This document shows, in pieces, positions 23,763 through 63,109 of a DNA stretch of 64,000 nt. Under the pieces are notes generated by a model, which searched no databases, was not told the DNA's origin, and saw only the letters and a program-made list of their open reading frames with translations. Within the stretch, counting starts at the first letter, position 1; the number at the start of each line of letters is the position of its first letter. Location: the IMG/VR virus record IMGVR_UViG_3300033153_015063, positions 62,001 through 126,000 of that record; one strand, 5' to 3'. The position numbers and the translations under genes were made by a program.

Positions 23763-24452
23763 ATGACCACCGTAGAGATACCTGAGGGTTCAGGGAATAG
23801 ATACCGCTATGATTATGAAGAGGGAGCTACGGTCTACAAGGGGCCGGTCGGCAATGCACCAGCCCTGGATGAGGAGGAATTTCTCTCTTTGATGGAAATG
23901 GGCATTCCCGAAGGGAGGATAGCCACCGAAAGAGATGGGATATACCGGAAAATCAAGGGTAACTACTACGACGACGACGGAAACCGCATCAAGGTATTCG
24001 TAAAGTACGGTTTCACCCAGTTGGGCAACCAGGAACCATACTTCTCCATCACAGCCGAGGCAGGGTCCAACAAAACCGGTTGGTCCAGTGGGATGCAGCA
24101 TGAAAAAATCGAGAACGCTTTCGAGGAGTTCCCAGAGCTCACCAGGTGGCATCTTACAAACATCAGTAATGGTCCGATGCACTATAATGCCAACGCCAAA
24201 CACCATTGGAAAAAAGATAAGCTTGACGCCTTCAAGAGTACCATCGTGTTCGGGGCCCTACCAGACGATGATATGGAAGACATCGAGTTTATGATGGACC
24301 AGTCTCCCGACGCCTTCCTTAACGATAGACTGCCAAAGTTGATGGAACAGTTTCGAAAGGACATGAAAAAGTTCAATGTTCCACCACCAAGAGGACAGAG
24401 AACACGAGAAGCTATCGACGTTGTGATGGCAGCAGCCTACGAAGACTGGTAA
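23763..24452 (+). CDS. leader-module protein with phage-type hypothetical cargo
   Basis: MTTVEIPEGSGNRYRYDYEEGATVYKGPVG; TTTATATA at 23732; leaderless start. Confidence 0.85.
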   Translation: MTTVEIPEGSGNRYRYDYEEGATVYKGPVGNAPALDEEEFLSLMEMGIPEGRIATERDGIYRKIKGNYYDDDGNRIKVFVKYGFTQLGNQEPYFSITAEAGSNKTGWSSGMQHEKIENAFEEFPELTRWHLTNISNGPMHYNANAKHHWKKDKLDAFKSTIVFGALPDDDMEDIEFMMDQSPDAFLNDRLPKLMEQFRKDMKKFNVPPPRGQRTREAIDVVMAAAYEDW

Positions 24453-24548
24453 CCACCTCCTCCATCATCCCTCCGTATCTTCCCACCTCCCACCTCCATC
24501 CTCCCCCGAACTCTTTAAATACTCCTCAGCCCATCCCACATTGATACC

Positions 24549-25646
24549 ATGACCGTCGTCGAAATCCCTCCAGGTTCAGGTAACCGCTACAAATACGTCT
24601 ACGAAGGCGGCAAGACTGTGTACAAGGGGCCGGTCGGCACGGCCCCGGAGCTTTCGGAGGGGGAGTTCCTGGAGATGTTCCAGGTTCAACTCACAGGACC
24701 CGAACCTACGAACCAGGATAAAGCAAATTCCTTCATCGCAGAGAATGAAGAAAAAATCAAGTCTGTCATCCGGGAAGGTCTCGGAGAAGAGTATGCCTGG
24801 GACCTTGACGACTGGGACGAAGATGAGCTCGTGGACCTCATCTACGAGATTCTCAACGACGCCAACAAGTTCGATGAACTGGGTGAAGAGGAACTTGAAC
24901 ACCGGGAACAGATTGCAGATATCGAGAAAGAACTCAAAGGTGCCCTTGAAGATGCTTCATCGACTGAAGAGAAAGAGAATCTGAAGTCCGAGGCAAAAAA
25001 GGAGATAGCCAAACTCAAATCGGCTTGGGATTGGGACGATGGAAAGGGGGCACTCATCGAGAGTCTGGTTTCCGACCTCGAACTCGAAGATGGACCATGG
25101 GCTGACTCCTTCAAATACGAACACCCCGACGAACCAGGCGAATGGGTGGCGATGAAAGAAGACGATGCCAAATCGGCCGCTATCGAGGATACCATCGGAC
25201 TCATTGAAGAAATGGGTGGCGATCTCGGTGATTTTGTCAAAGACCACGTCGACGAGAAGAAAGCGAAAAACTACTTCGAGATGGTTTATACCGAATGGGA
25301 TGAATCCTACATCGAAGATATCAGGGATGAAAAATCGAGCGATGAAGATGAATGGGCCAGTCGTCTTGAAGAGGAAATAGAAGAGTGGGGTGTTGATGAC
25401 GAAGACGAGCTCCGAGAGGTATTGACCAAGTCCAAACTCGATGAAGGACGTGGTGGATTTGACTACTACGCCAATAACTTCGGAGAAGATGAAGCTTTTA
25501 AGGTCGCCGATGGTAACGGGCTTATCGACATGCAGGCAGCGGCCGAGTTCGCTGTAAATACAGACGGTTGGGCCCACTCTCTTTCTGGCTACGACGGGAA
25601 CTATTCTGATATGAGTGGCGGTTACGTCACATTCAGGACAAATTAA
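24549..25646 (+). CDS. leader-module protein with very acidic cargo
   Basis: MTVVEIPPGSGNRYKYVYEGGKTVYKGPVG; own TTTAAATA box. Confidence 0.85.
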   Translation: MTVVEIPPGSGNRYKYVYEGGKTVYKGPVGTAPELSEGEFLEMFQVQLTGPEPTNQDKANSFIAENEEKIKSVIREGLGEEYAWDLDDWDEDELVDLIYEILNDANKFDELGEEELEHREQIADIEKELKGALEDASSTEEKENLKSEAKKEIAKLKSAWDWDDGKGALIESLVSDLELEDGPWADSFKYEHPDEPGEWVAMKEDDAKSAAIEDTIGLIEEMGGDLGDFVKDHVDEKKAKNYFEMVYTEWDESYIEDIRDEKSSDEDEWASRLEEEIEEWGVDDEDELREVLTKSKLDEGRGGFDYYANNFGEDEAFKVADGNGLIDMQAAAEFAVNTDGWAHSLSGYDGNYSDMSGGYVTFRTN

Positions 25647-25698
25647 CCAGGTCGTAGTCGCCGATCTCTTTTTAAACTTATCCAGACATCTTTTCTAC

Positions 25699-25971
25699 AT
25701 GGCCAACTATAGCACTGAAGACCTCGCCAAGATGCACCACTATCCCTACGTGAAAACCGTGACCCATCTCGTCGAGTTCTCCGAAGAGGTAAAAAAGAAG
25801 TTGCATAAGGAAATTATGAACATGACACCTGGCGACGAGGACCCCGTTGATGGTGTTGTGTTTCGGGACGTCGACATGAACACCATCCACATCTACTTCT
25901 ACGAAGAGCTCTCCGAACAGGCAGAGAACAAGCTCGATAAACTCGTTGAGAAGTGGGTCAACCCAACCTGA
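25699..25971 (+). CDS. hypothetical protein
   Basis: start at MANYSTEDL, downstream of a TTTTTAAA box. Confidence 0.65.
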   Translation: MANYSTEDLAKMHHYPYVKTVTHLVEFSEEVKKKLHKEIMNMTPGDEDPVDGVVFRDVDMNTIHIYFYEELSEQAENKLDKLVEKWVNPT

Positions 25972-26066
25972 CCATCCGATGAGGCAGTCCGAGTATCGTT
26001 CTTTCCCTTCTAGAGACCATCGACCATCCCGAAATACTTAAATATCACCCTATCATTCTATACCCA

Positions 26067-26470: not shown

Positions 26471-27985
26471 ATGTTAGGTTTCAATATCGAGGACCGTGAG
26501 GGCCAGTTTAAACTAATGGCTATACTTGGCTCGATGGCACTCATCCTGGCGAGTGCCTTCTACTACCTTCCTGGTATCGTTTACGAACCCTATACCGTCA
26601 AGGGTAAAATCAAGAAACATGATGGTGGAGGTGACATCAAAACCCTGGATGTGAGGGTCACCAACCTCGACACAGGTGAGTATCTCGAATCTGATACTTC
26701 AGATAAGGGCAAGTGGCAGGTCAATCTCGGCAACCTACCATCTGGTTACGATTGGGGAGATGTCATCAGGGCGGAGATTGTAGGAAGTGAGTATCGGGCT
26801 GAAGAAAATCACACCCTACAATCTGGAGAAACACAGAAAGACTTTGGTGATATGACCCCGAACATGCAACCAGTCGCTGACATCGTTGGAACCGATAGGT
26901 CTGCTGATAAGAATGACCAGGTTGACCTCAGCGGGGGTGACTCCTTCGACAATGATACTAACCCGGTGGACACTCTTACCTACAAGTGGGACTACGATGA
27001 CAGCGACGGCCTCGATTGGGACAACCCAGATGACACTGGACTGACAACTTCGTTCGTGGCAACATCGACAGTCACAGTAACATTACAGGTAGATGATAAC
27101 ACAGGTCTGGACTATGACACCGATACCGATTCTATAGTTGTCACCATCAGCAACCAGGCACCTACTGTTGTAGGAATCACCCACGACCAGAGTGGCGACC
27201 CAGACCCGACAGACAATGTAGAGTACACCTGTGATGCTACTGACCCGGATGAGGATTCACTTCAGTATAGATGGGACTGGAACAACGACGCCTCATGGGA
27301 CACATCCTATACATCCTCGAACTCGTCTTCAACCACCTTCGCATCTGGAACCCATACACCAAAGTGTCAGGCATATGATGGATACTTGACGGACTCTGAG
27401 GTGGATACCTCTACCCTCTACGTCAATTATACCTACACATTCACTCTACACTCAGGGTGGACACCTTTCGCTATGTTGTTCAACGATGGTAGATACAACA
27501 ATGCATCTTCACTCATGGATGATGAATCGTTGAATCTCCATGACGACAGTGGTATCATCTACTGGGACTACGTAGGCCAGAACTATAGCGATGGATACTT
27601 CACCAACTGGTCTGAGGCAGGAGACGACGAAGACTTCAACTTTGTACGGGGAAATACCTACTTCATCAACAATCCGGGGCTCAACAAAACCATCGTCATC
27701 AAAGGTCGTCTATGGGCTGACAGGGCCCTATCCTTCACTTCTGGTTGGTACTATCTCCCCTATGCAGGTGTCGAAAAGACTGTAGCAAACCACTACGAGA
27801 CCCTACTTCCATCATCACTCACAGAGGCTATGCTTATCGACCACAATGACCAGTGGTTCTCGACATCTTATATCTCTGGATTCCATGACGCAGGGTCCGA
27901 TGAGAACTTCGCCCTGACCACTGGGGTGTTTGTTCTGATAAACTTCGATTCATCGGATAGTTACACTTGGAGGTATCAGACATGA
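26471..27985 (+). CDS. surface protein with an N-terminal beta-sandwich and PKD domains
   Basis: YKWDYDD and YRWDWNND motifs; [10 protein letters not shown] shared with the next gene. Confidence 0.8.
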   Translation: MLGFNIEDREGQFKLMAILGSMALILASAFYYLPGIVYEPYTVKGKIKKHDGGGDIKTLDVRVTNLDTGEYLESDTSDKGKWQVNLGNLPSGYDWGDVIRAEIVGSEYRAEENHTLQSGETQKDFGDMTPNMQPVADIVGTDRSADKNDQVDLSGGDSFDNDTNPVDTLTYKWDYDDSDGLDWDNPDDTGLTTSFVATSTVTVTLQVDDNTGLDYDTDTDSIVVTISNQAPTVVGITHDQSGDPDPTDNVEYTCDATDPDEDSLQYRWDWNNDASWDTSYTSSNSSSTTFASGTHTPKCQAYDGYLTDSEVDTSTLYVNYTYTFTLHSGWTPFAMLFNDGRYNNASSLMDDESLNLHDDSGIIYWDYVGQNYSDGYFTNWSEAGDDEDFNFVRGNTYFINNPGLNKTIVIKGRLWADRALSFTSGWYYLPYAGVEKTVANHYETLLPSSLTEAMLIDHNDQWFSTSYISGFHDAGSDENFALTTGVFVLINFDSSDSYTWRYQT

Positions 27986-29346
27986 AAAAAGTCTCTATCT
28001 TCCTCTTACTGAGTTCAGTAGTGTTACTCTCGATGCTGGGAACTGTTGCGTCTTTCAACCCATCTTACACAGTCTATGGGGTTATCGAGACGGTAGAAGG
28101 TAACCCTATCCAGGATGCAAGTGTCACGGTGACAAACACTGATACAAACGAGAGTCTGAATACTACCACAGGTAGTGAGGGGAAGTATCAGGTCAACCTC
28201 GGTAACCTTCCATCAGGATGGTCGATAGGCGATACCATCGACATCGAGGTATCTTTTGATGATGTCACTGTAAACGACAACTTCACCACATCTGGAAACA
28301 GAAAGATGGTGGACTTCGAGTTGACCTTCTCAGACCCGGTGGCAATCATCATCTTCACCCCCGAGACCGTCTTTGTGGGTGATGTTGTCGAGTTCGACGG
28401 GTCATCATCATGGTCTAACGGCACCATTACCAACTGGAACTGGATTTTCGGCGACGATGATGCCGATGGAGGTGTGGATGTAACACACGTCTATGATGAA
28501 GCGGGTGTATACGAGGTCAGCCTGGCGATTGTAGATAACTACACGATGGCCGATACTCACTCTATCAACATCACAGTTTTGGAACCGTTCTGGAGTGGTT
28601 CAGCGTCATACGAAGTCAGACAGGGTGTCGATAGATGGATTGACATCTCTGAAAACCTGGTCTCTGATGCTTCTGTCGAATGTGCCGATAGTAGAGTGTC
28701 CTTTGTAGTAGAAAACAGTACATTGTTGTTGTCTTTCAACGCCGGAGATACCAACACTACATTACAACTTTCCATCACCAAGGAATATATTGTATACCAA
28801 CACTACATTACAATCGTAGTAGTAGAGGTATTCAGTGCTACATTATCCGCCAGTAACATCAACTCGTCAGGATTGATAGAGATTGAACTCTCAATTAACG
28901 GTGGAAAAACGCCTTATAGTATCGTGTGGGATTGGGGCGACGGAAATTACACGAACCTCACTACAAACCTGATCGAACTATCTTCCACTCACAACTACTC
29001 ATCTGTTGGTAACTATTCTATAGTATCCACAGTCACGGATGATGATGAATATAGTGTTATCAACGAGTATACTATAACCTTTGCCGATGAGGATGAAGAC
29101 GATGATAGTGCAGGCAACACAGCTACAGTGCTTACTGAGAACCAGAAAAAACAGGTAAGTGCTGTAACTATTACTGCTCTTGAAGTAGTTTTAGTCCTCT
29201 TTATGACTGTTTTCCTTTTCATGGTAGTTTCTAAAGTTGTAGAAATGAATACAACTAAGCTTGTGTTTATTCTACTGATTATCAGTGGGGCTATCTCTCT
29301 TTTATATGGTTGGATTGACCTATTCAGATTATTGGCATGGTGGTAA
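27982..29346 (+). CDS. surface protein with PKD domains and two C-terminal TM helices
   Basis: GGAGGT RBS; signal peptide; WIFGDD and WDWGDG motifs. Confidence 0.8.
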
Positions 29347-32300
29347 AAATGGATTTAAAAGACAAACCTATGCTACTCAGTGTAATGCTGGTCATCGGCA
29401 TCTTCGCTGTCGGTGGAGTTCTATGGTATAGCGGTTACTTTACAGTAGTTGTAGAACCATATCCTGTAACTATCCACTCGGATAGTCTCGATGATCTCTC
29501 AGGTCATCTGAACCTTGAGGTCACTGACGAAGTAGACGACTACGACGACGATGGATGGTCATACGGTGACGAGGAAACCGATGAGTTGGGGAGTGGCTGG
29601 GCTGAGATACCAACGGCCCAACCAATCTCGGCATCCTTCTCGGTTTATGTCCGAGACTGGGGGGAGAAAGAACCCGATAACGATGGTGGGGTAGTTCATC
29701 ACAACCCATCGTTTGCCTTTTTTCTTTCAACAGCCGATACCCTGACCCTTGACGAAACCAATGGTGTCGAGGTAATCTCTCTCGGAGACTTCTACATCTT
29801 CGTCGGTCTGGTATGGGAGAACAAACACGACAGGTACAAAGTAGAGTTTGGTTGTATGGAGAACAAACTCCACCACAAACATCCTGGTCAGATGGATGCC
29901 CTCGATGACTGGCATGTCGTAGATATTATCTACGACGGAAATTATGCCTACCTCAATCTGGAAGAACGAGACCAGAAAGGTAAAGGGTGGAAACATGGCC
30001 TGTTCAGGTTGGACTGTAAGGTAGAAACTACTATCAGCTCAGTAGGGTTTGAGTTCAACAAGAACCACTTTCTCGATGGAATAACCCTGACTGACGATGG
30101 AGAAGGTTCAGAACCTTTCGTTGATGCTGGTGAGGATTTTGATGCCATAGAGGATGTCTCCTTTGATGTTTCGGGTGATTATGGACATATGCCTACCGAT
30201 GTTGATGGAGTCTGGTGGGACATGGATGACAGCGACGGTACCGACGACCGGGATATCGCCACCAGGGATGGTTCATGGGTCTACGGGGACCCAGGGATTT
30301 ACACCGCTACGTTCTGCGTCGAGCTTGACGATGCTTCTCTCTATTGTGATAGTATCGAAATAGAGGTCGAGGCGATCTATCCTGACACCGATGGAGATGG
30401 TATCACTGACCCAGACGACAACTGCCCATCAATCCCCAACCCTGGGCAAGAGGATAATGACCTGGACGGCCTGGGTGATGTCTGTGACCCCGACGATGAT
30501 AACGACGGCGTTCTTGACACTACAGACAACTGCCAGTTCATCTGGAACCCACTCCAGGCCGACAACGACCTGGATGGTCTGGGTGACGTCTGCGATGACG
30601 ACGACGACAACGATGGCATCCTTGATACTGTCGACAACTGTCAATACACCTACAATCCCTTGCAAACAGACATTGATAGCGATGGAGAGGGTGACGCTTG
30701 TGATGGAGACCTCGATGGTGATGGGGTTCCCAACACATCTGACAACTGCCCATCAATCCCCAACCCTGGGCAAGAGGATAATGACCTGGACGGCCTGGGT
30801 GATGTCTGTGACCCCGACGACGATGATGATGGAGTTCTGGATGGGCCAGACAACTGCCAATATGTAGCAAACCCCCTACAAACAGACACCGATGCAGATG
30901 GACTTGGAGATGCATGTGACCCTGACGACGATAACGACGGTGAACCCGACACTACGGATAACTGCCAACTCATCTACAACCCAGACCAGATTGATACCGA
31001 TAGTGATGGTCTGGGTGATGTCTGTGACCCTGATGATGATGATGATACAATCCTGGACCCCGTTGACAACTGCCCTTTGACAGCAAACTTGGGGCAGGAA
31101 GATAACGATGCCGATGGGATAGGGGACGTGTGTGACCCCGACGATGATAACGACGGTGTGTTGGATGGGCCAGACAACTGCCAATACACTCCAAACCCAT
31201 CTCAACTCGATACTGACAGCGATGGGGAGGGTGACGCCTGTGACACCGACGACGATGGAGACGGTGTGTTGGATGGTCCAGACAACTGCCCGTTGACGCC
31301 GAACCCAGGACAGGATGATACTGATGGAGACAGCCTTGGAGACCTGTGCGATCCTGACGACGACAACGACGGCGTTCTTGACTGGGCCGACAACTGCCAG
31401 TATGTCGTGAATCCATCCCAGGCCGACAACGACGGAGATTCACTCGGTGATGCCTGTGACCCTGATGATGATGATGATGGTGTTCTCGATGGGGCCGACA
31501 ACTGCCCCTTCACCCCCAACCCAGGACAGGAAGACCTGGACTCCGACGGCCATGGTGACGCCTGTGATGATGATTGGGACGGCGACGGTATTGATAACGG
31601 GGATGATAACTGCCCAATCGTCCCCAACCCGGGGCAGGAAGACGCTGACGAGGATGGGGTCGGCGATGCCTGTGAGGATGATACCGACGGTGATGGTATC
31701 CCTGACCCCCTGGATAACTGTGTGTTGACGCCTAACCCCGACCAGACTGACACGGACGGGGACGGTGACGGGGACGCTTGCGACACCGACGACGACGACG
31801 ATACAATCCTGGACCCAGACGACAACTGCCCCCTTATCCCCAATCCAGGGCAGGAGGACAACGACCTGGATGGTCTGGGTGATGTCTGTGACCCGGACGA
31901 CGACAACGACGAGATAGACGACCCAGAAGATAATTGCCCTCTGGTCACAAATCCAGGACAGGAGGACCTGGACGAGGACGGGGTCGGTGACGTCTGTGAT
32001 GACGACGATGATGGTGATGGTATCTCTGATGAAGATGATAACTGCCCGACCATCCAGAACCCTTCTCAGACTGACACTGACGTAGATGGAATCGGTGATG
32101 CCTGCGACAGCGATGATGATGGCGATGGTGTTCCTGATACTACAGATAACTGCCCCTTGACCCCGAACAGCGACCAGGCTGACACGGATGGGGATGGTAT
32201 AGGCGATGCCTGTGAGGAACCCATCACAATCATACTCTTTGACATCTCTGACAACGTCACCTACATCGTCAATACAAGGGTGAACTTCTCTGGAGTGATT

Positions 32301-32729
32301 ATCTCTCCAGAGGACTGTTCGTTCTTATGGGAGTTTGGTGACGACAGAACGGCAAATGTCAAGGGCCCGAGTCACATCTGGTTATGGCTTGGGGAGTTCC
32401 AGATGAACATCACCGTGACCTGCGACCTGGACGAGGAGAAGAAGGTTGTCAACGTGACTATCGTTGAATCTGCACCTGGTCCTGCTGGCAAGGCCGAGGT
32501 GGTGTCAAAGATGGAATATCCGTTGACATACTTCCTTGTGCCGTTCCTCGTGTTATTCGGTCTCGGACTGTTTGTGTTCCAGGCCCCGACGTTGGTAGAT
32601 AACCAGAAGTACGTCATGGCCGTTATGTTGGGCATCATAGCGATAATGATGTTCGAGTTCTTCGGCATCACCAGCTACTCTGTCAACTTTGGGGCGATCT
32701 ACTCTGGCATGGGAGTTACACCGAGGTGA
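29337..32729 (+). CDS. surface protein with PKD domains and 17 thrombospondin type 3 repeats
   Basis: 17 units of DNCP..PNP.Q.D.D.DG.GD.CD; N-terminal anchor; two C-terminal TM helices. Confidence 0.9.
30380..32216 (+). repeat. 17 x 108-bp coding repeat (thrombospondin type 3)
   Basis: counted DNC motifs; units 1 and 4 share about 80 identical bp. Confidence 0.85.
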
Positions 32730-33277: not shown

Positions 33278-34081
33278 TTACCTCTTCTGTTTGTAATCTG
33301 TGAAGTATTTACTCAAAGGCCACGGGACGCCACGGCCATGGCTGCTGTAAAGTATGTCCTGGGCAGCGTTGATACTCTTTGCCCCGGCGTTGTACTTCTT
33401 CACAGCCTTTCCAACGATGGGTTTGAGGCGTTTCAGCTCCTCGATGTCTCTGGCATCAAGCCAAAGACCATAGTTGTAAGAGTTTTCATCATGGTAGCTA
33501 CCAGGGTCCCTCCGTTCTTTGGCGAAAGCTCTGTGATGGTCATAAGCACCCCTGGTCAACCCTTCAGGCGTCATCACCTCTTGAGAGTCATAGGCGATGA
33601 AGAAACGAGCTGCCCTGTCGTCCCAGTCCCAATCGCTTGCATACCCATGCCCTTTTGGTCTCTGCCCATAAACATTGAGATAGGTCATCCCGGCGATACG
33701 TTCCTTTTGGACCTTGTACTTCCCAGGATATTTTTCATCGAGATGCTTCTGGAACGAGGTCTCCATACGCCTACTCGGAGCTTTTCCCTGATACTTGGGT
33801 AGGTGTGTGTCAGCCTCTTTCAAAAGTAGGATACCCTCTTCTTTTTCTTTGATGGATTGGTCGATGGACTTCTTTATCTCCCGGGTATCCAACTTCTCAA
33901 TGGCATCGTAGTTCTTGGAGTGTTCTGGTCTTGGTGTTATCTCTCCAACCATAGCCGCCATGAACTCTCCCTCCGTCAACTGAGGACTGTCTCCCACAGG
34001 TCCCTTGTAGACCGTAGATCCCTCTTCATATTCATAGCGGTATCTATTCCCTGAACCCTCAGGTATCTCTACGGTGGTCAT
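33278..34081 (-). CDS. leader-module protein
   Basis: MTTVEIPEGSGNRYRYEYEEGSTVYKGPVG; upstream 40 bp identical to that of gene 23763. Confidence 0.85.
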   Translation of the reverse strand: MTTVEIPEGSGNRYRYEYEEGSTVYKGPVGDSPQLTEGEFMAAMVGEITPRPEHSKNYDAIEKLDTREIKKSIDQSIKEKEEGILLLKEADTHLPKYQGKAPSRRMETSFQKHLDEKYPGKYKVQKERIAGMTYLNVYGQRPKGHGYASDWDWDDRAARFFIAYDSQEVMTPEGLTRGAYDHHRAFAKERRDPGSYHDENSYNYGLWLDARDIEELKRLKPIVGKAVKKYNAGAKSINAAQDILYSSHGRGVPWPLSKYFTDYKQKR

Positions 34082-51800: not shown

Positions 51801-51887
51801 CTAATGGTTGTAATTTCTGTTAGTTATACTGGGCTTATGTCCAAGGAATTATATAAGAGTAAGACCTATAAAACCCCTATAGGCCCT

Positions 51888-52000: not shown

Positions 52001-52134
52001 GGTTGGTTCTATGGAAGTATATTTCTGAAATCGAGGCTGAGTTATACTGACTATAGAGACAGCGGCATCGTAATCCATAGGAATTTACCATGACCCAGAA
52101 GTTATGTATAGGTAAGGTTTGGTACTGTAGTTAG

Positions 52135-52389: not shown

Positions 52390-52434
52390 CCTTGTTCAGT
52401 TATCGCTTGTTTTTGCCTGTTTCCTGGTGGTTAT

Positions 52435-52695: not shown

Positions 52696-52712
52696 CTCTC
52701 CATAAGGTAATG

Positions 52713-53168
52713 TCAGTCATCTGGGCGTGGGCCTGGGCCTTCCCACCACCAATAGTACATCACACCATCATCTCCCTCTCGTTCATCTCGAAACCACTTC
52801 GTTCCACAAACAGGGCAATAGATCACACTCCTTATCTCGTGGGCTGATGCTACCGCACCAAGGCAACAAAGGTTATCGCCTCCAAATTGGGATTCTTCGA
52901 AGGTCTCACTATTGAGACAATGTTTACAGGTAACCTTTTTTACATCAATGGTGCAAAGAATGTCCTTTGGAGATACACCACAAGAGACAGTATTCTCACT
53001 TGTCCAATAGTGGACCATTGGTCCCTTCTGATTAACAGGTTTTGATGGGTCGTCACTTTCTTGTATTGCACTACCTTTGACATGGATCTTACATCTCCGG
53101 CACCAATACGCTTTACCTACCTCTTTTAGATTATCCCCACAATCGGGACAGACGTTAGTCATCCTCAT
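52713..53168 (-). CDS. multi-zinc-finger protein
   Basis: CPDC...CRRCKIH, TCKHC and CPVC. Confidence 0.7.
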   Translation of the reverse strand: MRMTNVCPDCGDNLKEVGKAYWCRRCKIHVKGSAIQESDDPSKPVNQKGPMVHYWTSENTVSCGVSPKDILCTIDVKKVTCKHCLNSETFEESQFGGDNLCCLGAVASAHEIRSVIYCPVCGTKWFRDEREGDDGVMYYWWWEGPGPRPDD

Positions 53169-53184
53169 CCTACCTTCTTACCTT

Positions 53185-54498
53185 TCAGATTGGGATGGTC
53201 CACGTCTTGGTCTTGGGTTTGTACTTCCCACCAACGGACTTGACAGCGGCCACAGCGTCAGAAAACACAGAACGTTCGAGGAAAGATCCATCGCCTATGG
53301 TAACTGATACGGACTTGGCGTTAACCCTCTTCAGCACAAGTTCTTCATGGACACCCTTTATTTTATCCTCGATGTCGGCCCTATCGGACACCCGATCTTT
53401 TTTCGCTTTGCGGGATACGGCAGCTTTGGCCTTTCGTTCCTCGGCCTTCCGGGCTGCCTCTTCTTTCATCTCTTTCTCCCGCTCAGCATCCCGGATCTCA
53501 CGTTTTGCCTTCCGTTCGGTCTCTTTCTCGGTCTTGATGACAACGGCCTTTTTCTGACGAACCTCGAAAGCGGCCTGGACCTCGGCCTCGACACCAAGGA
53601 GCTCGATGGAGTTCTTCAAACCAGAGCTTGATGGACTGTGGATTGGGCCCCACTCGGCCTGACGCATCTCATCCTCAGAGAGTTCTTTCGAAGTGAGCTT
53701 CACCTTCATGTTCTCGATGACCCGGTCGGCCAGGTCCTTGTCAGCCATGATGTCTTTGTACAGGGCGGAACCGTAGCAGTCGGAGTAGTCACATCCCTGG
53801 GCCCCATCGGACCGGTGATGAAAGATGGTCTCGATGAGATAACCCGATGGATCTTCTACCATCAAGTCGATGTCCTTCTGATTGATGCCAACCGCCCGGC
53901 CTGGTGTGGTGTAATAGTACACCCGCCAATCGTCGTAGGCATCGACGTTCATCTTCAGCGTATCAGAATCGGGGAACCACGTGGCTCTCTTCGTGGAGAT
54001 ACCACCATCCACGAAACCAATCTGTGTGCTCTCACCGTCCGTCGGGGCCCCGTTGACCTCCACCAGTCCCTTCTCGCTGATAAAGTCCTCGATGACCTTG
54101 TTGATCTTCTCCCGTTCGGCCTCGGCATCAGCTTCTTTCTGCTTTTTTTCCTCGACCTTCCGTATCCCTTCCGCCTTGGCTTTGACCCTGGCTTTGGCAT
54201 CATCATCCAATCGCCCTCGGGCCTCGTCGATGTCGGTCTGGAAGTTATCGAGAAGATACTGAACACTTTCATTGGTCGGGGCGAAGTAAGTATAGTTTTT
54301 ACCGTAGCTGGATCTCACGACGAAGGTGTTGGAGAGATTTTTTACCTTTGGGAGGGCGGCTGCCGGGACTGTATGAACGTCCCAGTGACTGTGCCAGAAA
54401 CAATCGTCGCAGTAGTCAGGGCAGTCCGAGAAGGAACCATCCTCGTCAACATGCACGGCCTCCACCCATGATTTCCGAACCACTTCTTCGTCGTTCAT
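53185..54498 (-). CDS. hypothetical protein with coiled coils
   Basis: GAGGTGA RBS; C-terminal GGKYKPKTKTWTIP motif. Confidence 0.8.
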   Translation of the reverse strand: MNDEEVVRKSWVEAVHVDEDGSFSDCPDYCDDCFWHSHWDVHTVPAAALPKVKNLSNTFVVRSSYGKNYTYFAPTNESVQYLLDNFQTDIDEARGRLDDDAKARVKAKAEGIRKVEEKKQKEADAEAEREKINKVIEDFISEKGLVEVNGAPTDGESTQIGFVDGGISTKRATWFPDSDTLKMNVDAYDDWRVYYYTTPGRAVGINQKDIDLMVEDPSGYLIETIFHHRSDGAQGCDYSDCYGSALYKDIMADKDLADRVIENMKVKLTSKELSEDEMRQAEWGPIHSPSSSGLKNSIELLGVEAEVQAAFEVRQKKAVVIKTEKETERKAKREIRDAEREKEMKEEAARKAEERKAKAAVSRKAKKDRVSDRADIEDKIKGVHEELVLKRVNAKSVSVTIGDGSFLERSVFSDAVAAVKSVGGKYKPKTKTWTIPI

Positions 54499-56260: not shown

Positions 56261-56602
56261 CTATCTTTCATCCCCTGAACCGTGTAGCTTCTGGTCCGCT
56301 TTTCTCTTCGAGAGCTTCTGGACGTTCTTCTCCAATACATTGTTGAAGCTCAGGCCGAGGGTGTCACATATCCTGGCCAGATACCAACAGACGTCCCCGA
56401 TTTCTTTCTCTATAAGTGGCACATCGAGTTTTTCATCACGATACCACTTCTTGACCTTCTCGGCTATCTCTCCAGTCTCACCAGTGAGACCGAGTGTCAG
56501 ATACATGACCTCGACTATCTTCTCGTGTTTGGCCTGGTCGAGAGATGGGTAGACTACTGTGGTTTTCGTGAAAGCCTGGTATTCATCGGGGTCCATACCC
56601 AA
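56261..56602 (-). CDS. MazG-like nucleotide pyrophosphohydrolase
   Basis: LGLTGETGEIAEKVKK, KEIGDVCWY, N..KL..R...GSGDER. Confidence 0.85.
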   Translation of the reverse strand: MGMDPDEYQAFTKTTVVYPSLDQAKHEKIVEVMYLTLGLTGETGEIAEKVKKWYRDEKLDVPLIEKEIGDVCWYLARICDTLGLSFNNVLEKNVQKLSKRKADQKLHGSGDER

Positions 56603-56648: not shown

Positions 56649-57644
56649 TCATCGACTCAGGAACCCTACTACATCGTTCCATCTGTCTCTCAGTTCTTCA
56701 AGGTTCTCAACGTGTTCATTCTCCTTTTTTACCTTCTCCTGCCACTTTTTTTCATCTCTGATAGCCTCGACCTCATCTCTGATAAGACCAACTATAATGC
56801 CAGGCCCCAGGGCATCAACCTCCCAACTCTCAGCACCATACTTGGAGATATAATCGACGGACCTGCTATCGGAAATCTTGGCTGGGTTGGGAGGTGGGCT
56901 GTGTTGTTGGACCTGGTCCCAGTTCAGTGCTATCCTCCTGACCTCAAGGAGATTGTTGGTATGAGTATCACTTGCACCTTCATAATCATCGAACCTCTCC
57001 ACCCAGTGATCCCAGGTTTCACGTTCCCATTTTCTATTGACATCACCTTCCAAAAAGATGGTCAACCTCTCAAAGATGTCTCTGGTCATGTCGATGCCCG
57101 ACGGATCGTGGTCCCCGAGATGGAGAAGGATAGGATACTTCCCACTATTAAGATAACCAAGAAAGCGTTGAGATGCCTCCCACATCGCACTCTGGCTTGA
57201 GTATCCTCTACATGAGAAGTACGGAACATCAAGGCTGGGGCAGATTGCCTCAAGGATGCCCACGAGGGCGTCTTTTTCAATCCACACCTCAACCATATAC
57301 TCCTGACCATCCCACTTGTTGATTTGGAAGGACTTGACTGCTGACCTGATGATGTCCACCGGGCTGTCCCAATGGTTGTTTTCCCGCACATAACGGGTCC
57401 TGTCAGTGATATGGTCCCAATCAATCAGCCCGGCTAGCCTGGCGTTGTTGATGACGGTCTTTATGCGGTTGTAGGATTTGTCATTGTTTTCTATCAGACC
57501 TTTGCTGACAAACTGGTAGTAGAGCTGTCTGATAGTCAGGTCAAAACCCTGTTGGACATGCTCGTCGATGATTGCTGTAGCCATCTCTATAAGAGATGTG
57601 CTATCCTTCTGAAATCTCTTCTTTACATACTCGATATTGGGCAT
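56649..57644 (-). CDS. winged-helix plus Toprim protein (Topo VI-A/Spo11/JetD-like architecture)
   Basis: TIRQLYY; VWIEKDAL; GYSS; LHLGDHDPSG; WEVDAL. Confidence 0.75.
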   Translation of the reverse strand: MPNIEYVKKRFQKDSTSLIEMATAIIDEHVQQGFDLTIRQLYYQFVSKGLIENNDKSYNRIKTVINNARLAGLIDWDHITDRTRYVRENNHWDSPVDIIRSAVKSFQINKWDGQEYMVEVWIEKDALVGILEAICPSLDVPYFSCRGYSSQSAMWEASQRFLGYLNSGKYPILLHLGDHDPSGIDMTRDIFERLTIFLEGDVNRKWERETWDHWVERFDDYEGASDTHTNNLLEVRRIALNWDQVQQHSPPPNPAKISDSRSVDYISKYGAESWEVDALGPGIIVGLIRDEVEAIRDEKKWQEKVKKENEHVENLEELRDRWNDVVGFLSR

Positions 57645-57727: not shown

Positions 57728-58045
57728 TCATAGTCTGGTTTTTCTGATACTTCGTAGGAAATCCAGACTTTTCCGTGTCAATCGAAAAACTTCCATCTCC
57801 ATCTCTATCAGATACCCATCTACGATAAGTTTTTCGAGGGTAGTAGAGTGGAAGGTTTGACCTTCGGGACGCCAACATTTTTCCCCAAACTCCCACATAA
57901 GTTGTTGGCGGTCAACATCCAACATATAATCTCCAGATAATATATTGTCGATGTGTATTAGATTGATACGATAGATAACGTCGTATAGGATTTTTTCATC
58001 TATATTATCGGATTCAAAAGAATCCAGACTTTCACTTCCTTCCAT
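57728..58045 (-). CDS. small protein, possible winged helix
   Basis: TLEKLIVDGYL...FRLTRKS. Confidence 0.6.
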   Translation of the reverse strand: MEGSESLDSFESDNIDEKILYDVIYRINLIHIDNILSGDYMLDVDRQQLMWEFGEKCWRPEGQTFHSTTLEKLIVDGYLIEMEMEVFRLTRKSLDFLRSIRKTRL

Positions 58046-59345
58046 TTTTCAGGACCTTCACGTAGTTGACAATGGTCTCCTTATTTCCGTTGTAGCTGTT
58101 CTGCTTCTTGACCTTGGCAGAGATGGTAACGATTGTTCCTTCCTGGATGTTGTCCCGATTCTCATTGGCGAACCACTTGACGGATCGACCAGTGGGGTTA
58201 TCATCGTCATCGACCTCGTCCATGATATGAAGCGTCCAGGCACCATACCCACTCTGGCCCGACCTGTGTGCCTTGACATGGACCCGCACACTGACCTTAT
58301 CACCTTCTTTTCCGAGGAATCCATTGGCTGTGTTGGTGGGTGTCTTCGAGGCAAGGCTCTGGGCGTTCTCACGGGTGTAGGCGGAAACGATGCTGGCCAC
58401 GATACCGAGAGACCTCCGGGTGAGGGCGATGGATTTTGAAGCCGCATTCATGTTCCTTTCGTAGTCCGACATGGGTTTCAGGGCCCGGCGGGCCCAGTCA
58501 AGGGCATCGGCAGCGAGTTTCTGGTCGGCGTCGGTGGGATTCCACCGTTTCCATTCACTCTTGGTCATGGTCTCGGGGGGGTCGAAAAGGCGGAGTGCGA
58601 TATTGGCCGTTGAGTGGACACCATCCTCCTCTGCCTTCCATTTCGGCATCCAGCCGCCGATACGGATGCAGACAGCGACAGCGGTCAGATAGTCTTTGGT
58701 GTCAATCTCCCAGTAATCGTGGCTATACTCACCCATGTCATCAATGGACCGCATGACCACGTTGATGGTCTTCTGATAGTTGGCGAGGGTCTTGGGGTCG
58801 ATGCCACCGAGATAATCTCGGACGCACTTCGATCCAACCTGCTTGTAGACGCCGGTGTCCTCTTCGAGAACCACGTAGGTGATCTTCCGGGCGGATCTAC
58901 CTGCCTTCTTGGTCCCACAGTGGTCACACATAAACCGACCCCGGAACGTCTCGGGGATGACCTCGCCAGGCACAGAGTAGAACACCTCGGTACCCTTTTT
59001 ATCCTCGGTCTTGAGTTTCTCGATGGACCCGATGAGCTGGAACCCCTCGATATGGGGTGCCTCACCGGTTATTCGAACAATGGCCCACTGGCAGAGTTCT
59101 GCGTAATAATTGCTGGGCTTTCCGTTCACCCTGATGGGACACACCTGGTCCTTGGCCTTTCCCCTGAAGTCCTTTTCCGTCCACTTTTCGATGAGTGTCA
59201 TGGTGGGCTCAGGGAATCCGTACTTCAGGGCCTTCTTTGCCTGCTGCCCGATTTTCTTCTCCAGGGTCTCCAGATTATACTGGGGGATGAGGAAGAGTTC
59301 AGGGTCCTTCCCAACAAGTGTTTCGGCGGTTTCATAATCCATCAT
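58032..59345 (-). CDS. phage-type protein with a zinc motif and a C-terminal OB-fold-like region
   Basis: CDHC...QVGSKCVRDYLG; ISAKVKKQNSYNGNKETIV. Confidence 0.8.
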   Translation of the reverse strand: MMDYETAETLVGKDPELFLIPQYNLETLEKKIGQQAKKALKYGFPEPTMTLIEKWTEKDFRGKAKDQVCPIRVNGKPSNYYAELCQWAIVRITGEAPHIEGFQLIGSIEKLKTEDKKGTEVFYSVPGEVIPETFRGRFMCDHCGTKKAGRSARKITYVVLEEDTGVYKQVGSKCVRDYLGGIDPKTLANYQKTINVVMRSIDDMGEYSHDYWEIDTKDYLTAVAVCIRIGGWMPKWKAEEDGVHSTANIALRLFDPPETMTKSEWKRWNPTDADQKLAADALDWARRALKPMSDYERNMNAASKSIALTRRSLGIVASIVSAYTRENAQSLASKTPTNTANGFLGKEGDKVSVRVHVKAHRSGQSGYGAWTLHIMDEVDDDDNPTGRSVKWFANENRDNIQEGTIVTISAKVKKQNSYNGNKETIVNYVKVLKNGRK

Positions 59346-59466: not shown

Positions 59467-59865
59467 ATGGATCGTAAATCGTGGTTGTGGGGTTTTGCTA
59501 AGGAGATGAAATGCCCTGGTTGTGGTAAGGCATCAACTATGACCCCAGGTGAAGATGGGTGGGAGTGTGATAGTGGCTGTCACTTTACCCCTGAAGGTAA
59601 ACTTGATAAAGTAGCTACGATGATGAAGGGTACCACAAACGTAATCAAATCTTCGTATCACAACCAATTGGAGGTTGATGTACTCGAAGCATTTACCATG
59701 ATGGAGGTAAAAAAAGAACACCTACGAGATATATCCGTAGAACGTTCTGGTCGATACGTAGTGGTGAAAAGCCCGAACCCAGGTATCCTTATCGGTTCTG
59801 GTGGATGCACAGTCAAAGGTGCAGGTGAACATATTGGCTGTCGTATCAAAGTTTTGAAGAGTTAG
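59467..59865 (+). CDS. zinc ribbon plus KH-like domain protein
   Basis: CPGC...CDSGC; PGILIGSGG (GxxG loop). Confidence 0.65.
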   Translation: MDRKSWLWGFAKEMKCPGCGKASTMTPGEDGWECDSGCHFTPEGKLDKVATMMKGTTNVIKSSYHNQLEVDVLEAFTMMEVKKEHLRDISVERSGRYVVVKSPNPGILIGSGGCTVKGAGEHIGCRIKVLKS

Positions 59866-60674
59866 TTGAGGTCACCCTTCAGTCTTCCCATGACATCTGT
59901 CATATATTCTTTTCCTTCCTTGGACCAGAGTGGGTCGGTAGATGGGTGGACTTCGAGTTGGTAACCAAGTATTCCCGACGCCGTCCTGAGAATGTCGTGT
60001 TCTACGGAGTTCTTTCGCACGATGAACATGGATTTTCTCTTCAGTTTATGTTCATGGATGAACCGGGCAAGATTCTTGCCAGAGTGATTTATACTGTCGC
60101 GGTACGCCCTCCAGTCCCATTTCATGTCGTGCTTCTCGTTGAACTGACGTTGCCAACCTGGTGTTGCAATGTGAGGACGTATTGGGAAGTAATCTTCTGG
60201 AATTGGCCCAAGTGTTTTTGAAAGTGCAAAGGTATTGACATCATCTGGTCTGAACCCTACTTTATCCATAGCCTGATAGTAATTTTTGAAGGAAGGAACA
60301 GTATCTTTTGCTCTAACCCATCTTGGTTCAGGCGACTCCGGGATGAACACTACAAAGTCTTCTGCTTTTATAGGATAATCCATAACAATTTTCTGCCATT
60401 CTTTGACATGCCTGCTAGTGGCTAGGTCGGCGACCTCACTGATATTGAAAGCGGTTAACTCCGGTTCGATGTCTGGATTCTGTGATAATGTTTCTGATAA
60501 TAATCTATCCCGGAGTTTTTGTTCTTTCTGGCCAACAACCTGGAACATCTCCAGGAACTCCCCCTCCGAAAGCTCCGGGGCCGTGCCGACCGGCCCCTTG
60601 TACACAGTCTTGCCGTCTTCGTACTCGTACTTATAGCGGTTGCCGCTTCCAGGAGGGATTTCAACTATGGACAT
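59862..60674 (-). CDS. leader-module protein
   Basis: MSIVEIPPGSGNRYKYEYEDGKTVYKGPVG. Confidence 0.85.
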   Translation of the reverse strand: MSIVEIPPGSGNRYKYEYEDGKTVYKGPVGTAPELSEGEFLEMFQVVGQKEQKLRDRLLSETLSQNPDIEPELTAFNISEVADLATSRHVKEWQKIVMDYPIKAEDFVVFIPESPEPRWVRAKDTVPSFKNYYQAMDKVGFRPDDVNTFALSKTLGPIPEDYFPIRPHIATPGWQRQFNEKHDMKWDWRAYRDSINHSGKNLARFIHEHKLKRKSMFIVRKNSVEHDILRTASGILGYQLEVHPSTDPLWSKEGKEYMTDVMGRLKGDLN

Positions 60675-61009: not shown

Positions 61010-61759
61010 ATGACCACTGTAGAAATCCCACCAGGTAGTGGTAATCATTACCGCTATGTCTACGAAGAGGGAGCTACGGTCTACAAGGGGCCGGTCGGCA
61101 ATGCACCTGAGCTGAGTGAGGATGAGTTCATGGCTATTCTGGGGCGTAGTAATCTAAAGGAACATCCCCGCTACGATACCTACAAATGGACACTTAATAC
61201 AACTAAGCAACAAAATCCTGGATACTCCAACGAGTATTATATCTGGCAGACACTTTCAATCCTATCTGGTAGACTTTCTCATCAGGAGATGGTATCTCTC
61301 GATACTGCATTGGTTGAAGATGGTGTATGGAAGCAGAAAGCCTATATCGTCGAAGTAGACGGAAAGGAGATGGATAAGTTTTGGTGGGATAAGGATACTA
61401 CGAAGGTAGTCAGAAAAAGTGTACTGCGTTCTGGTGAAGGTTTCATGGGTGAGATAGTCACTGTAGACCCGAGAGACGAAGGTATCTCAACAGCATATCA
61501 TCCTGACCAGAACCTAACCACAGGTCTTCCACTTTTTCGATGGAAAGAGTTTATCCCTGGTGGTCTTGGGGCCGGTAAACACCCCGCCAACTTCGACCCT
61601 GACCAGATACGGAAGGGCATCAATGTTGAGATGGAGCACGTGGTTGGTTCCACTTCACTTACAGAACAGGAAAAGATTCGAGTAGCGGCCGAGATAGCCA
61701 CTGACCATCTTATGGAAGACCCGAAATACTACGATAAACTGGAAACCCTGGGTTTGTAA
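61010..61759 (+). CDS. leader-module protein with a C-terminal DUF5661-like domain
   Basis: QIRKGINVEMEH...IATDHLMEDPKYYDKL. Confidence 0.8.
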   Translation: MTTVEIPPGSGNHYRYVYEEGATVYKGPVGNAPELSEDEFMAILGRSNLKEHPRYDTYKWTLNTTKQQNPGYSNEYYIWQTLSILSGRLSHQEMVSLDTALVEDGVWKQKAYIVEVDGKEMDKFWWDKDTTKVVRKSVLRSGEGFMGEIVTVDPRDEGISTAYHPDQNLTTGLPLFRWKEFIPGGLGAGKHPANFDPDQIRKGINVEMEHVVGSTSLTEQEKIRVAAEIATDHLMEDPKYYDKLETLGL

Positions 61760-61807
61760 TAGACACCAACAGAACAGTTTATAACCAACCTTTTCTATTC
61801 CCTATCC

Positions 61808-62476
61808 ATGACCACCGTTGAGATTCCTGAGGGCTCAGGCAACCGCTACAGGTACGATTACGACGCCAGTACCAAAGGCACTGTGTATAAGGGGCCTGTA
61901 GGGAATAGTCCTGGGCTTTCGGAGGAGGAGTTTCTGAGGGTTATTCAACAAACCATTGGTGGGCATGAAGCGTCGGCTAGCTCTGTGATGGGAACTCCGG
62001 CGAAGCGTGGTACCTACGTCGAACCAGACGATGATGAGCTCGGATGGGATTTCAATGATGAATGGGATTTTGTCCATGACCTGTCAGATGACAGTGAACG
62101 GCAGACGGGGACCGGCCTTCTCATAGAGAAGAGTGGTGACACTGTTACAATCATCGAGTGGACCGAGGCATCAGGTCTCATCGAGGAGTTCGAGGACCCC
62201 GAAGCCACCGTTATCAAACAAGAGGCGAGGGTGGACTTGAGTGATCTACTCGACCCAGAACAACCACATCTCAGTCCTGCGTCCTACGGCGAGGGTAGAG
62301 ACTATGATGACGCCTTCAACACCTACAAGAGGATACAGAAGGCAAAATACTACGAGCAGACCGATGATGTCTACAGACTCGAAAAAGAGTTGAAAGACAT
62401 CATCGTAGAAGCTGCTATCTCCTGGATGGGTCATTGGGGTGGGGATGAAGAGTTCGTGACCGATGTCGGTGACTGA
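61808..62476 (+). CDS. leader-module protein with acidic cargo
   Basis: MTTVEIPEGSGNRYRYDYDASTKGTVYKGPVG. Confidence 0.85.
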   Translation: MTTVEIPEGSGNRYRYDYDASTKGTVYKGPVGNSPGLSEEEFLRVIQQTIGGHEASASSVMGTPAKRGTYVEPDDDELGWDFNDEWDFVHDLSDDSERQTGTGLLIEKSGDTVTIIEWTEASGLIEEFEDPEATVIKQEARVDLSDLLDPEQPHLSPASYGEGRDYDDAFNTYKRIQKAKYYEQTDDVYRLEKELKDIIVEAAISWMGHWGGDEEFVTDVGD

Positions 62477-62541
62477 CCACCAACATAAACCGCTTGATTT
62501 ACCTTCCGTTTTGTATTTTCAAAAAAAGCAGGAAAGAACCA

Positions 62542-63109
62542 ATGACCATAGTCGAAATCCCCCCAGGTTCAGGGAATAAATACAGGTACGTTTACGAACA
62601 ATCAAGTCAGGACACTGTCTACAAGGGGCCAGTAGGCCAGGCCCCGGAACTGGGACGACGACCATCAACACGCCCCAGATATTTCTATTGATGGAACGAT
62701 CTATGCTGTAGAGGAGAGAATCCCTGAGTCCGTTTGGCTCTCGGCACGTCGGTGGGTGTTCAGTTCCGATCCCAGGGACAAGGAGAGCTTGATAGACGCC
62801 TATAACGGCTTGTCAGACCGCCAGAAAACGGTCATAGCGACGGATGTGAGGGAAACCTTTCGTCGGGTCTATAACGCTGATAAAACCACCATTTTTCGGT
62901 CCTTTCGGGGGCATGAGGTTGATATGGGTGGGTTGTCGGTCACTGATGAAAGATCAACCAGAGTTGGAACTGATGTTAGGGCTTTCGAGGTCTCCCATAG
63001 CGACGTAATGCTTCACTATGCCCAGGATGAGTCACCTCTGGAATCCAGGGCCTTTGGACATGAACGGGAGATTATACTCAGACCTGATGCTAACCCAATA
63101 CCAATCTGA
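62542..63109 (+). pseudogene. frameshifted leader-module gene with ADP-ribosyltransferase-like cargo
   Basis: leader frame stops at 62691; removing one G at 62652-62654 joins it to the open frame ending at 63109; IFRS, LSVT and EREIIL motifs. Confidence 0.65.

Follow-up and report, generated by a model that had tools for sequence, protein, structure and literature searches.

Thirteen genes in a 64,000-nucleotide stretch of an IMG/VR contig encode one conserved module of 45 residues, followed in all but one truncated copy by a protein part that we call the cargo and that is mostly unrelated from gene to gene. The stretch (the window) covers positions 62001-126000 of contig IMGVR_UViG_3300033153_015063, which is JGI Ga0366824_1000500 and is 242,596 bp long. 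On balance, we take the module to be an autonomous acidic protein-protein docking domain that gives all its carriers a shared address. The domain family is new to every library searched; in principle, constant tags joined to variable cargo are already known.

A conserved module in thirteen genes of the window

A preliminary description of the window had listed 13 genes with a shared N-terminal module. We built a hidden Markov model (HMM) from these 13 modules and ran it on the six-frame translation of the 64-kb window. All 13 starts translate to the module (78-99 bits, E-values from 1e-23 to 1e-30), and exactly these 13 strong matches were recovered. Two divergent copies scored weakly (~17-18 bits), and nothing else in the six-frame translation of the window rose over noise. 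A chance motif was rejected because the 13 matches have E <1e-23 and the rest lie at noise.

To describe the conservation, we aligned the first 50 residues of the 13 copies. Thirteen columns are invariant (M1, G9, N12, Y14, Y16, Y18, Y25, G27, P28, V29, G30, P33 and F40) and 11 further columns are at least 90% conserved. Relative to the first copy, the others are 61-70% identical, apart from the variant that starts at 42949 (37%). Similarity stops after the EF helix, as the preliminary description had it. Among the cargos of the 12 full-length window genes, one pair is related (35344-36255 and 43144-43641, 35% identity, E 1e-23) and all other pairs have E >0.01. The residues that follow the module have an ordinary composition, unlike a low-complexity linker.

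The module is under strong purifying selection. In a comparison of 11 window copies, pS (the proportion of synonymous differences) is 0.64, which is near saturation, and pN (that of nonsynonymous differences) is 0.18. Over the first 60 nucleotides (nt) of the 13 window copies, mean nucleotide identity is 67%. Because synonymous sites are near saturation while pN is low, it is the protein and not the DNA that is conserved, and the copies are old. A DNA-level repeat or a transposon end was rejected on the same grounds, and the sole long perfect DNA repeat is one 113-bp pair.

The same pattern holds in a set of 178 unique modules. Y14, Y16, Y25, G27 and G30 never change, Y18, E37, P28, P33 and F40 are at least 97% conserved, and T23, G11, V29 and R15 lie within 91-99% (R15 at 91%). 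Position 35 is L, I or M in 100% of the modules and position 37 is E in 99%. The best-kept stretch is Y-x-G-P-V-G-x-A-P-x-(L/I)-x-E-x-E-F, and conservation extends through codon 44 with its peak at codons 25-40.

The module in the parent element and in related elements

Counts for the parent contig cover ~98% of its length, pieced together. This contig holds 40 strong module copies and two weak ones, located on both strands, singly or in small clusters. Module genes make up ~12% of a crude set of 322 genes. No other paralogous family of the element comes near this size; the second largest comprises 10 N6/N4 DNA methyltransferases. A circular form of the element is probable, since the contig ends overlap inside a module gene.

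A profile search of 1.84 billion representative proteins returned 293 metagenomic protein clusters with the module at E ≤1e-3, of which 145 at E ≤1e-10. These proteins are 68-365 amino acids (aa) long, and in almost all of them the module begins at one of the first seven residues. True exceptions, with an internal or C-terminal module, are P0026, P0070, P0106 and the protein at contig position 39506. The module was absent from 185,579 bacterial and archaeal species genomes (one genome per species, narrow and broad patterns), from IMG/VR other than the parent contig, from 50,697 phage and archaeal-virus records and from 72,556 plasmids.

Scanning metagenomes yielded 53 short contigs (1-5 kb) in three JGI data sets and one more contig in an ENA sample. 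There are 112 modules in 114 kb of such fragments, often 3-6 consecutive on one strand, and relatives of the element's GyrA, methyltransferases and PKD proteins lie on the same fragments. The dense arrays and the shared genes make the module a hallmark of an uncultivated related clade, where it is multi-copy too. In the sequence collections searched, the module is confined to this clade of elements.

A loop-less subtype is common among the relatives. It has two or three residues in place of the PxGSGN loop (VEI-G/N/K-G-H-x-YRY). The 42949 variant of the window is akin to it: it lacks the PxGSGN loop and retains YRYxY...YRGPVG...ExEF.

Cargos of the module

We grouped 199 non-redundant cargos into 159 BLAST clusters, 132 of which are singletons. 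This agrees with the layout first proposed, in which a constant module is joined to mostly unrelated, exchangeable cargo. For several module-cargo fusions of the contig, orthologues that are likewise fused occur in other metagenomes (P0070 and P0131 for gene 35344-36255), which indicates that the fusions are stable genes. A few cargos could be recognized. They include a Ham1-like NTP pyrophosphatase, a RelA_SpoT nucleotidyltransferase and a YopX-like protein, whose domain is encoded by four further genes of the element as well, there without a module. Remote members carry AAA_5 ATPases (four), DUF6876 and DUF4240. PolB, gyrase, the topoisomerases, RFC, ribonucleotide reductase and the giant PKD proteins are all without the module.

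Most cargos were unrecognizable, and no recurrent immunity gene family was seen next to the carriers. A 63-aa open reading frame (ORF) at 42949-43140 and a 69-aa ORF at 44403-44612 follow carriers. The window proteins contain no known trafficking domain (MuF or other) in Pfam or NCBIfam; a similarity to Rhs YD repeats has E ~2.

The RelA_SpoT cargo gene adjoins the gene of a CCA-adding enzyme. At contig 51975-54109, the module-RelA_SpoT fusion (L083:2695-3510, minus strand) lies directly downstream of the PolyA_pol/HD (CCA-adding) gene (L083:3507-4829, minus strand), and a PPDK_N protein is encoded close by. This layout recalls tRNA-targeting alarmone-synthetase-like toxins paired with tRNA repair.

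Within the window, cargo pI ranges from 4.1 to 10.4, so the acidic and basic cargos first described are indeed present. The first module gene (23763-24452, plus strand, 229 aa, 95.9 bits) has a cargo of pI 5.6 without a family match, and the TATA motif CTTTATATACTC lies ahead of it at 23731-23742. The second (24549-25646, plus strand, 365 aa, 94.5 bits) is preceded by CTTTAAATACTC at 24513, and its acidic cargo (pI 4.1) had no match in Pfam, NCBIfam or PHROGs. Two minus-strand genes carry basic cargos: 33278-34081 (267 aa, 94.5 bits, cargo pI 9.2) and 35344-36255 (303 aa, 95.9 bits, cargo pI 10.4). The loop-less variant has a GTG start (42407-42949, minus strand, 180 aa, 78.4 bits).

Another basic cargo (pI 10.2) is found in gene 43144-43641 (minus strand, 165 aa, 92.5 bits). 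Modelling this whole carrier with AlphaFold2 (AF2) on a 4-sequence alignment gave a poor model, with an overall predicted local distance difference test score (pLDDT) of 63 and no fold match. Its C-terminal part is predicted as three helices, the pLDDT reaching 80-93 for residues 90-155 only. For the cargo of 44609-45112 (minus strand, 167 aa, 93.4 bits), a paralogue that also bears the module lies at contig 26464, and L047 contains a relative. Next in position are 45652-46224 (minus strand, 190 aa, 93.5 bits), whose acidic cargo had been labelled coiled-coil and gave weak SMC-like matches only, and 46281-46688 (minus strand, 135 aa, 98.3 bits), which has an acidic cargo and whose module we modelled with AF2.

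The remaining module genes lie near the end of the window. Gene 61010-61759 (plus strand, 249 aa, 96.9 bits) encodes a C-terminal DUF5661 domain (PF18905, E 4.6e-11, 43.3 bits against a Pfam gathering cutoff of 27), as had been proposed. The cargo labels ADP-ribosyltransferase-like and winged-helix-like drew no support from Pfam, NCBIfam, PHROGs or PDB sequence searches. The nearest result is a non-significant forkhead match (E 0.09) for 59862-60674 (minus strand, 270 aa, 96.2 bits). Gene 61808-62476 (plus strand, 222 aa, 91.6 bits) has an acidic cargo. The last copy (62542-62691, plus strand, 78.7 bits) is a truncated module of 49 codons that ends just before the helix, with no cargo homologue downstream.

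The two divergent copies are module-like N-termini. One (EIPKGSGNLYIYGY...YIG, 17.9 bits) belongs to a 389-aa protein (36954-38123, plus strand). This protein has an HExxH zinc-protease motif (HEVGHH) and a sub-threshold match to the lethal-factor-type metalloprotease family PF07737 (E 0.005). The protein may serve as a processing protease or be yet another cargo. The other (EIPKGSGNYYAY...YLG, 17.3 bits) belongs to a 273-aa protein (2835-3656, minus strand) encoded within a long minus-strand operon of very large PKD/fn3 proteins.

Predicted fold and charge of the module

The AF2 model of the module, based on a 65-sequence alignment, has a mean pLDDT of 86.9. It shows a compact three-stranded sheet and a helix, with predicted strands at residues 2-5, 13-19 and 22-29 and the helix at 37-54. 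Foldseek comparisons of this model with the PDB (best E 1.1) and BFVD (best E 0.18) returned nothing significant, so that a confident predicted fold is left with no significant match to a characterized domain in either collection. Neither the 14 window proteins nor 111 remote members gave a module match in Pfam-A 2025, NCBIfam r20 or PHROGs v4. The statement that the system had not been described before agrees with what we found in Pfam, NCBIfam, PHROGs, the PDB, annotated phages and plasmids and the literature searched.

The module is acidic, with a pI of 4.1-4.8 and a mean net charge of -3.2. The proteome of the element has a median pI of 5.7 and is hence not that of a salt-in halophile; for this reason a halophile origin of the module's acidity was rejected.

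Searching PDB sequences gave sub-significant matches. The best were the N-terminal strands of family I inorganic pyrophosphatases (PPases), with E 0.03-0.17 over 15-20 residues, followed by a WW domain and Rhs YD repeats (E ~1-2). For instance, the Thermus PPase 2prd, the best PDB sequence match and still non-significant, reads V-I/V-E-I/V-P-x-G-S-G-N-K-Y-E-Y-D, and four other PPases align at the same position (E 0.03-1.7). The module differs from these enzymes in that an entire subtype of it does without the PxGSGN loop and the rest of the PPase domain is missing. There was no PF00719 match, and no PPase among the top 50 PDB fold matches listed.

A proposed shared address and its possible destinations

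The same constrained acidic module is attached to more than 150 unrelated proteins, which is best explained by a docking unit with one common partner. That the module is an autonomous domain is indicated by its position, which is mostly N-terminal, yet internal or C-terminal in several proteins. The enzyme cargos (Ham1, RelA_SpoT, AAA_5, YopX-like and DUF5661) need no common substrate, which supports the view of a single partner. Every carrier would thus present the same conserved surface and all would bind the same partner. In this way a jumbo archaeal virus-like element would address its large and fast-turning complement of accessory proteins. The idea of an address tag, raised in the preliminary description, is the most economical account of these data, and docking on one receptor is what we infer from it; the genome-tethering form of the idea is unlikely, as set out below.

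We considered three destinations. The address may lead into the interior of an assembling particle or a DNA-transfer apparatus, with the cargo entering the next cell together with the DNA; by analogy with known systems this is possible, though we would not count on it. A slightly more tentative suggestion is a viral or host hub in the infected cell, to which the module would attach in the manner of an adaptor or a dockerin. Mutual oligomerization of the carriers is an improbable third.

The closest parallel for the first destination comes from phages. The internal proteins of T-even phages are diverse anti-defence proteins that have only a capsid targeting sequence (CTS) in common (PMC3012670; PMC7411985), and SPN3US propeptides are cleaved after a motif reminiscent of that of T4 gp21 (PMC7411985). 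As is proposed for the module, the T4 CTS (on IPI-III and Alt) and the long propeptides of the ejection proteins of the giant phage SPN3US are a single address element at the N-terminus of diverse, fast-evolving accessory proteins. The likeness extends to a conserved L-x-E near the module end and to core replication and structural proteins that are untagged. The conserved L35-x-E37 of the module would fit L/I-x-E, which we take to be the cleavage consensus of T4 gp21. However, the T4 CTS is a cleaved peptide of 10-20 residues, whereas the module is a folded acidic domain of 45 residues that is sometimes internal or C-terminal; it is thus not the short unstructured N-terminal propeptide of a T4-type CTS. 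There are also about 4 carriers in T4 and about 40 here, the host here is archaeal, and no capsid, scaffold or prohead protease was recognized.

Polymorphic toxins provide a second comparison. MuF phage toxins bear RelA/SpoT-type C-terminal domains (PMC5576092, PMC12226406). The element resembles the MuF polymorphic toxins of temperate phages in having such domains, but polymorphic toxins have a known trafficking domain, whereas here none was recognized, and there is no obvious cognate immunity gene after each carrier. Moreover, most cargos here are not recognizable toxins, and there are many copies per genome instead of one.

In dockerin-cohesin systems, a small module docks many unrelated proteins onto a single receptor. 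The PE/PPE proteins of ESX secretion likewise have a small conserved module on many otherwise unrelated proteins, with lineage-specific expansion (PMC5442627). Both share with our case the principle of a small module, many unrelated carriers and one receptor or export route. They have no sequence or fold relation to the module, no cohesin-like repeat receptor was identified, and the cargos here look cytoplasmic. Large DNA viruses also encode BRO-N and KilA-N proteins, with a conserved N-terminal domain, variable C-termini and many paralogues per genome. BRO-N and KilA-N are basic DNA-binding domains of ~100 residues, whereas the module is acidic, half that size and unrelated in sequence.

Several observations count against the docking reading. 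Both the partner and the binding are putative. With a simple fold and no significant match, the structure offers no functional pointer. The loop-less and main subtypes occur on the same contigs, which tells against any single-partner model.

Further points count against the particle in particular. No capsid, portal, terminase or prohead protease was recognized with Pfam and PHROGs in ~98% of the contig, in which most large ORFs are orphans. The one packaging-like ATPase resembles HerA/VirB4 and bears zinc ribbons. The element could also be a plasmid, given its ParA-like ATPase, its iterons and its serine recombinases. The promoters look strong and of canonical host type, and so suggest early or constitutive rather than late expression. 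Finally, a folded domain of 45 residues is unlike the 10-20-residue targeting peptide of T4, and forty packaged protein species would be many.

Alternative roles of the module

The carriers could instead form an adaptor family, in which the module would engage a single host machine, for instance a protease, an unfoldase, a chaperone or a clamp, and the variable part would select the targets. The F-box/PRANC-ankyrin and BTB multigene families of large eukaryotic viruses are a parallel. Lineage-specific expansion to ~12% of the genes, cargos that are mostly small orphans with a fast turnover (132 of 159 clusters being singletons), strong host-type promoters that fit early expression and an acidic module suited to protein contacts are all consistent with such a role. 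We nevertheless consider it unlikely, because several cargos are complete enzymes (Ham1, RelA_SpoT, AAA_5) and not binding modules, the absence of the module from the 185,579 species genomes leaves no host-derived origin visible, and no host hub was identified.

A less probable role is oligomerization, in which the modules would bind each other and form homo- or hetero-oligomers or a mixed scaffold. The sheet and amphipathic helix of the model are compatible with it, and so is a pattern like that of the N-terminus of fusellovirus integrases. This part of SSV-type integrases is reported to control dimerization or tetramerization (PMC8371274). The preliminary description had noted by eye a likeness to the N-terminal hairpin of the SSV1 integrase, and the likeness is indeed visible. 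Both are encoded by archaeal viruses or virus-like elements and have the same order of strands and helix and a similar local pattern, which in the fusellovirus integrases is G-x-Y-Y-V-Y...N-G...Y-V-G-P followed by a helix; side by side, the SSV1 integrase reads Y-x-x-E-Y-E-N-G...Y-V-G-P and the module Y-R-Y-E-Y-E-x-G...Y-K-G-P. Homology is unsupported, since hhalign gave probabilities of 3.6% with the single sequence and 1.1% with a profile of 7 fuselloviruses, and, unlike SSV-type integrases, none of the carriers has a recombinase domain after the module. Nor is there an obvious benefit in 40 unrelated proteins forming hetero-oligomers indiscriminately.

It is more doubtful still that the module is a DNA-binding domain of the AP2 or integrase-arm type, tethering the cargos to the genome or to its 27-bp iterons. 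The topology is that of AP2 and arm-binding domains, R15 is 91% conserved and the genome contains repeated motifs. AP2, HNH-associated AP2 and integrase folds appear among the weak fold matches, but only at E 1.5-4 and a TM score of ~0.4, which is non-significant (the TEM1 AP2 domain ranks 7 in the PDB with E 2.8 and TM 0.42; AP2 and an integrase rank 19 and 25 in BFVD with E 1.5-1.8). No significant fold or sequence match speaks for DNA binding. The module's charge of about -3 and pI of 4.1-4.8 in a non-halophilic proteome are not those of a basic contact surface and make the genome tethering that had been proposed unlikely, and the invariant Tyr, Gly and Pro residues are typical of a core and turns, not of a basic surface.

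Promoters, repeats and a proposed origin of new fusions

The claim that most module genes have their own TATA box and a leaderless start is confirmed. A TATA-like box lies 25-35 nt ahead of the ATG in 9-10 of the 13 window genes. Two genes have the box at about -45 and after it a Shine-Dalgarno-like site (AGGTG), and one gene overlaps with its upstream neighbour. Over the whole contig, a TATA box at -42 to -24 precedes 24 of 34 module genes compared with 33 of 287 other genes. The geometry extends to the relatives: of 53, over half show a TATA-like box ~27-30 nt ahead of the ATG (some of these boxes were assigned by eye), and others have GGTGA. Stand-alone genes have a TATA/BRE box centred ~27 nt before the ATG, which makes them leaderless, and GGTGA-type sites precede operon-internal genes. 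The gene expression signals are archaeal, with which the RFC-type clamp loader and the haloarchaeal-virus-like PolB agree.

Four or five stereotyped types can be told apart in the upstream ~40 nt, each common to several module genes. For instance, the genes starting at 34081 and 23763 are identical over the last ~43 nt before the ATG and 98% identical over the first 60 nt of the module, and their cargos are unrelated. The upstream ~45 nt of 43641 and 60674 are closely alike as well, with the TATA box at about -45 and AGGTG; identity is 78% for this upstream segment and 68% for the module nucleotides. For the core motif CTTTATATACTC, 0.33 occurrences would be expected in the window, and there are 16.

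A 113-bp repeat comprising the first 38 codons of the module is 100% identical between window positions 62542-62654 and L001:7639-7751 (contig 51824-51936). The two copies are 72 kb apart, have unrelated flanks on both sides and are both truncated. The second abuts the N-terminal GGAVRD motif of the CCA-adding enzyme, one base out of frame. Possible readings of the repeat are debris left by recombination, a fusion with a frameshift and a recoding site. Considering this perfect pair together with the gene pairs that are alike in promoter and module and unlike in cargo, we suggest that new fusions would arise via recombination within a conserved promoter-plus-module cassette, occasionally leaving debris.

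It is hardly credible that the cassette (promoter, leaderless start and first codons) has no protein function of its own, being spread by recombination and kept for efficient transcription or translation. The stereotyped upstream segments, at times better kept than the module nucleotides (78% against 68% in the pair above), and the perfect 113-bp copy of the module's 5' part fit this view, but amino acids are held (pS 0.64 against pN 0.18), and conservation reaches codon 44 with a maximum at codons 25-40. The module is also retained where it is internal or C-terminal and where a Shine-Dalgarno site precedes it within an operon, and its fold is confidently predicted.

The promoter motif also occurs in a tandem array. 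Six 27-bp units lie at 50884-51042, five of them with the exact module-gene promoter motif CTTTATATACTC. The array may be linked to the regulation of module genes or to replication. It is part of a 1.5-kb stretch (50600-52135) without an ORF of at least 50 aa and with a strong positive GC skew (+0.27). After the 27-bp units, GTA/GGTAGTAG-rich runs are broken about nine times by GAATTAAATG(A/T). Serine recombinase genes flank the stretch at 47860-48678 (minus strand) and 49283-50233 (plus strand). The stretch could serve as an origin or a partition site or encode an array of small transcripts; Rfam had no match within 50600-52135.

The parent element

We read the element as a jumbo archaeal virus, the alternatives being a megaplasmid or a plasmid-prophage. 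Its recognized replication genes encode a family B DNA polymerase, GyrA, GyrB, a type IA topoisomerase, an RFC-type clamp loader and helicases. The DNA polymerase is closest to those of haloarchaeal tailed viruses (the HF1, HF2 and HRTV group), with ~30% identity. Genes of nucleotide metabolism encode a class II ribonucleotide reductase, a thymidylate-synthase-like protein, a dCMP deaminase and NUDIX, HD, MazG and Ham1 proteins; the MazG gene lies at ~56261-56596 (minus strand). A CCA-adding enzyme, Ro60/TROVE, a MoxR AAA+ protein, vWA proteins and a TnpB-like protein were also recognized, as were two serine recombinases and the ParA-like ATPase. The Methanoperedens jumbo circular elements seem unrelated, since they are described as having host-like replication machinery and metabolic genes (PMC13444090), which are lacking here.

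The HerA/VirB4-like P-loop ATPase has 559 aa (L008:7000-8679, minus strand, contig 233918-235597), with the motifs GGTGSAKT and IDPKGEW and inserted zinc ribbons. Just three homologues turned up among 5.8 billion proteins, one of which is encoded on a 45-kb contig. The ATPase could serve in packaging or transfer. The ParA-like protein is of the ParA/MinD type (AAA_31, E 5e-13; L090:7078-8196, plus strand, contig ~142.5-143.6 kb). At least 10 paralogous N6/N4 DNA methyltransferase genes are dispersed round the element, a number that suggests heavy self-modification against restriction.

The element encodes several very large proteins with PKD, fn3 and thrombospondin repeats. In the operon at 2267-19580 (minus strand), PKD, fn3 and beta-propeller signals occur in orphans of 1490, 790, 714, 574, 425 and 386 aa. 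No PHROG matched this operon, which may represent a module for a tail, a baseplate or the surface. At 26471-32729 (plus strand), three consecutive PKD/CarboxypepD_reg proteins are encoded. The last of them (1130 aa) contains 17 thrombospondin type 3 repeats (E 2.7e-163), which at the DNA level are 108-bp tandem arrays (30417-32008).

Two further window genes matched PHROGs and had no Pfam match: 56649-57644 (minus strand) matches phrog_6247, annotated as DNA topoisomerase (E 3e-108), and 58032-59345 (minus strand) matches phrog_2319, whose function is listed as unknown in PHROGs (E 1e-49). Close upstream of the first module gene, a perfect tandem repeat of 21 bp x 4 (23090-23174) lies within an ORF at 22884-23699 (plus strand).

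Implications

Most genes of archaeal viruses are orphans, and the takeover of the host by these viruses is little understood. In this 242-kb element, about 1 in 8 genes share one undescribed domain, which offers a handle on the whole accessory repertoire. Once one partner of the module is found, the place of action of dozens of uncharacterized proteins follows. The module HMM is also a specific marker for an unnamed clade of large archaeal elements.

Tentatively, the module may belong to a protein-sorting system of this clade's own, in which ~40 effectors per genome would be loaded onto one receptor, for instance inside a particle or transfer apparatus, and delivered with the DNA. If so, this route might be one without homologue in bacteria, eukaryotes or known archaeal viruses, which we put forward with the same reserve. 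If the destination is the particle, the module would be the first protein-delivery tag for an archaeal virus and a possible tool for loading foreign proteins. If it is a host hub, the module would mark a central vulnerability of the host. A dedicated receptor, if found, would define a new protein-sorting route.

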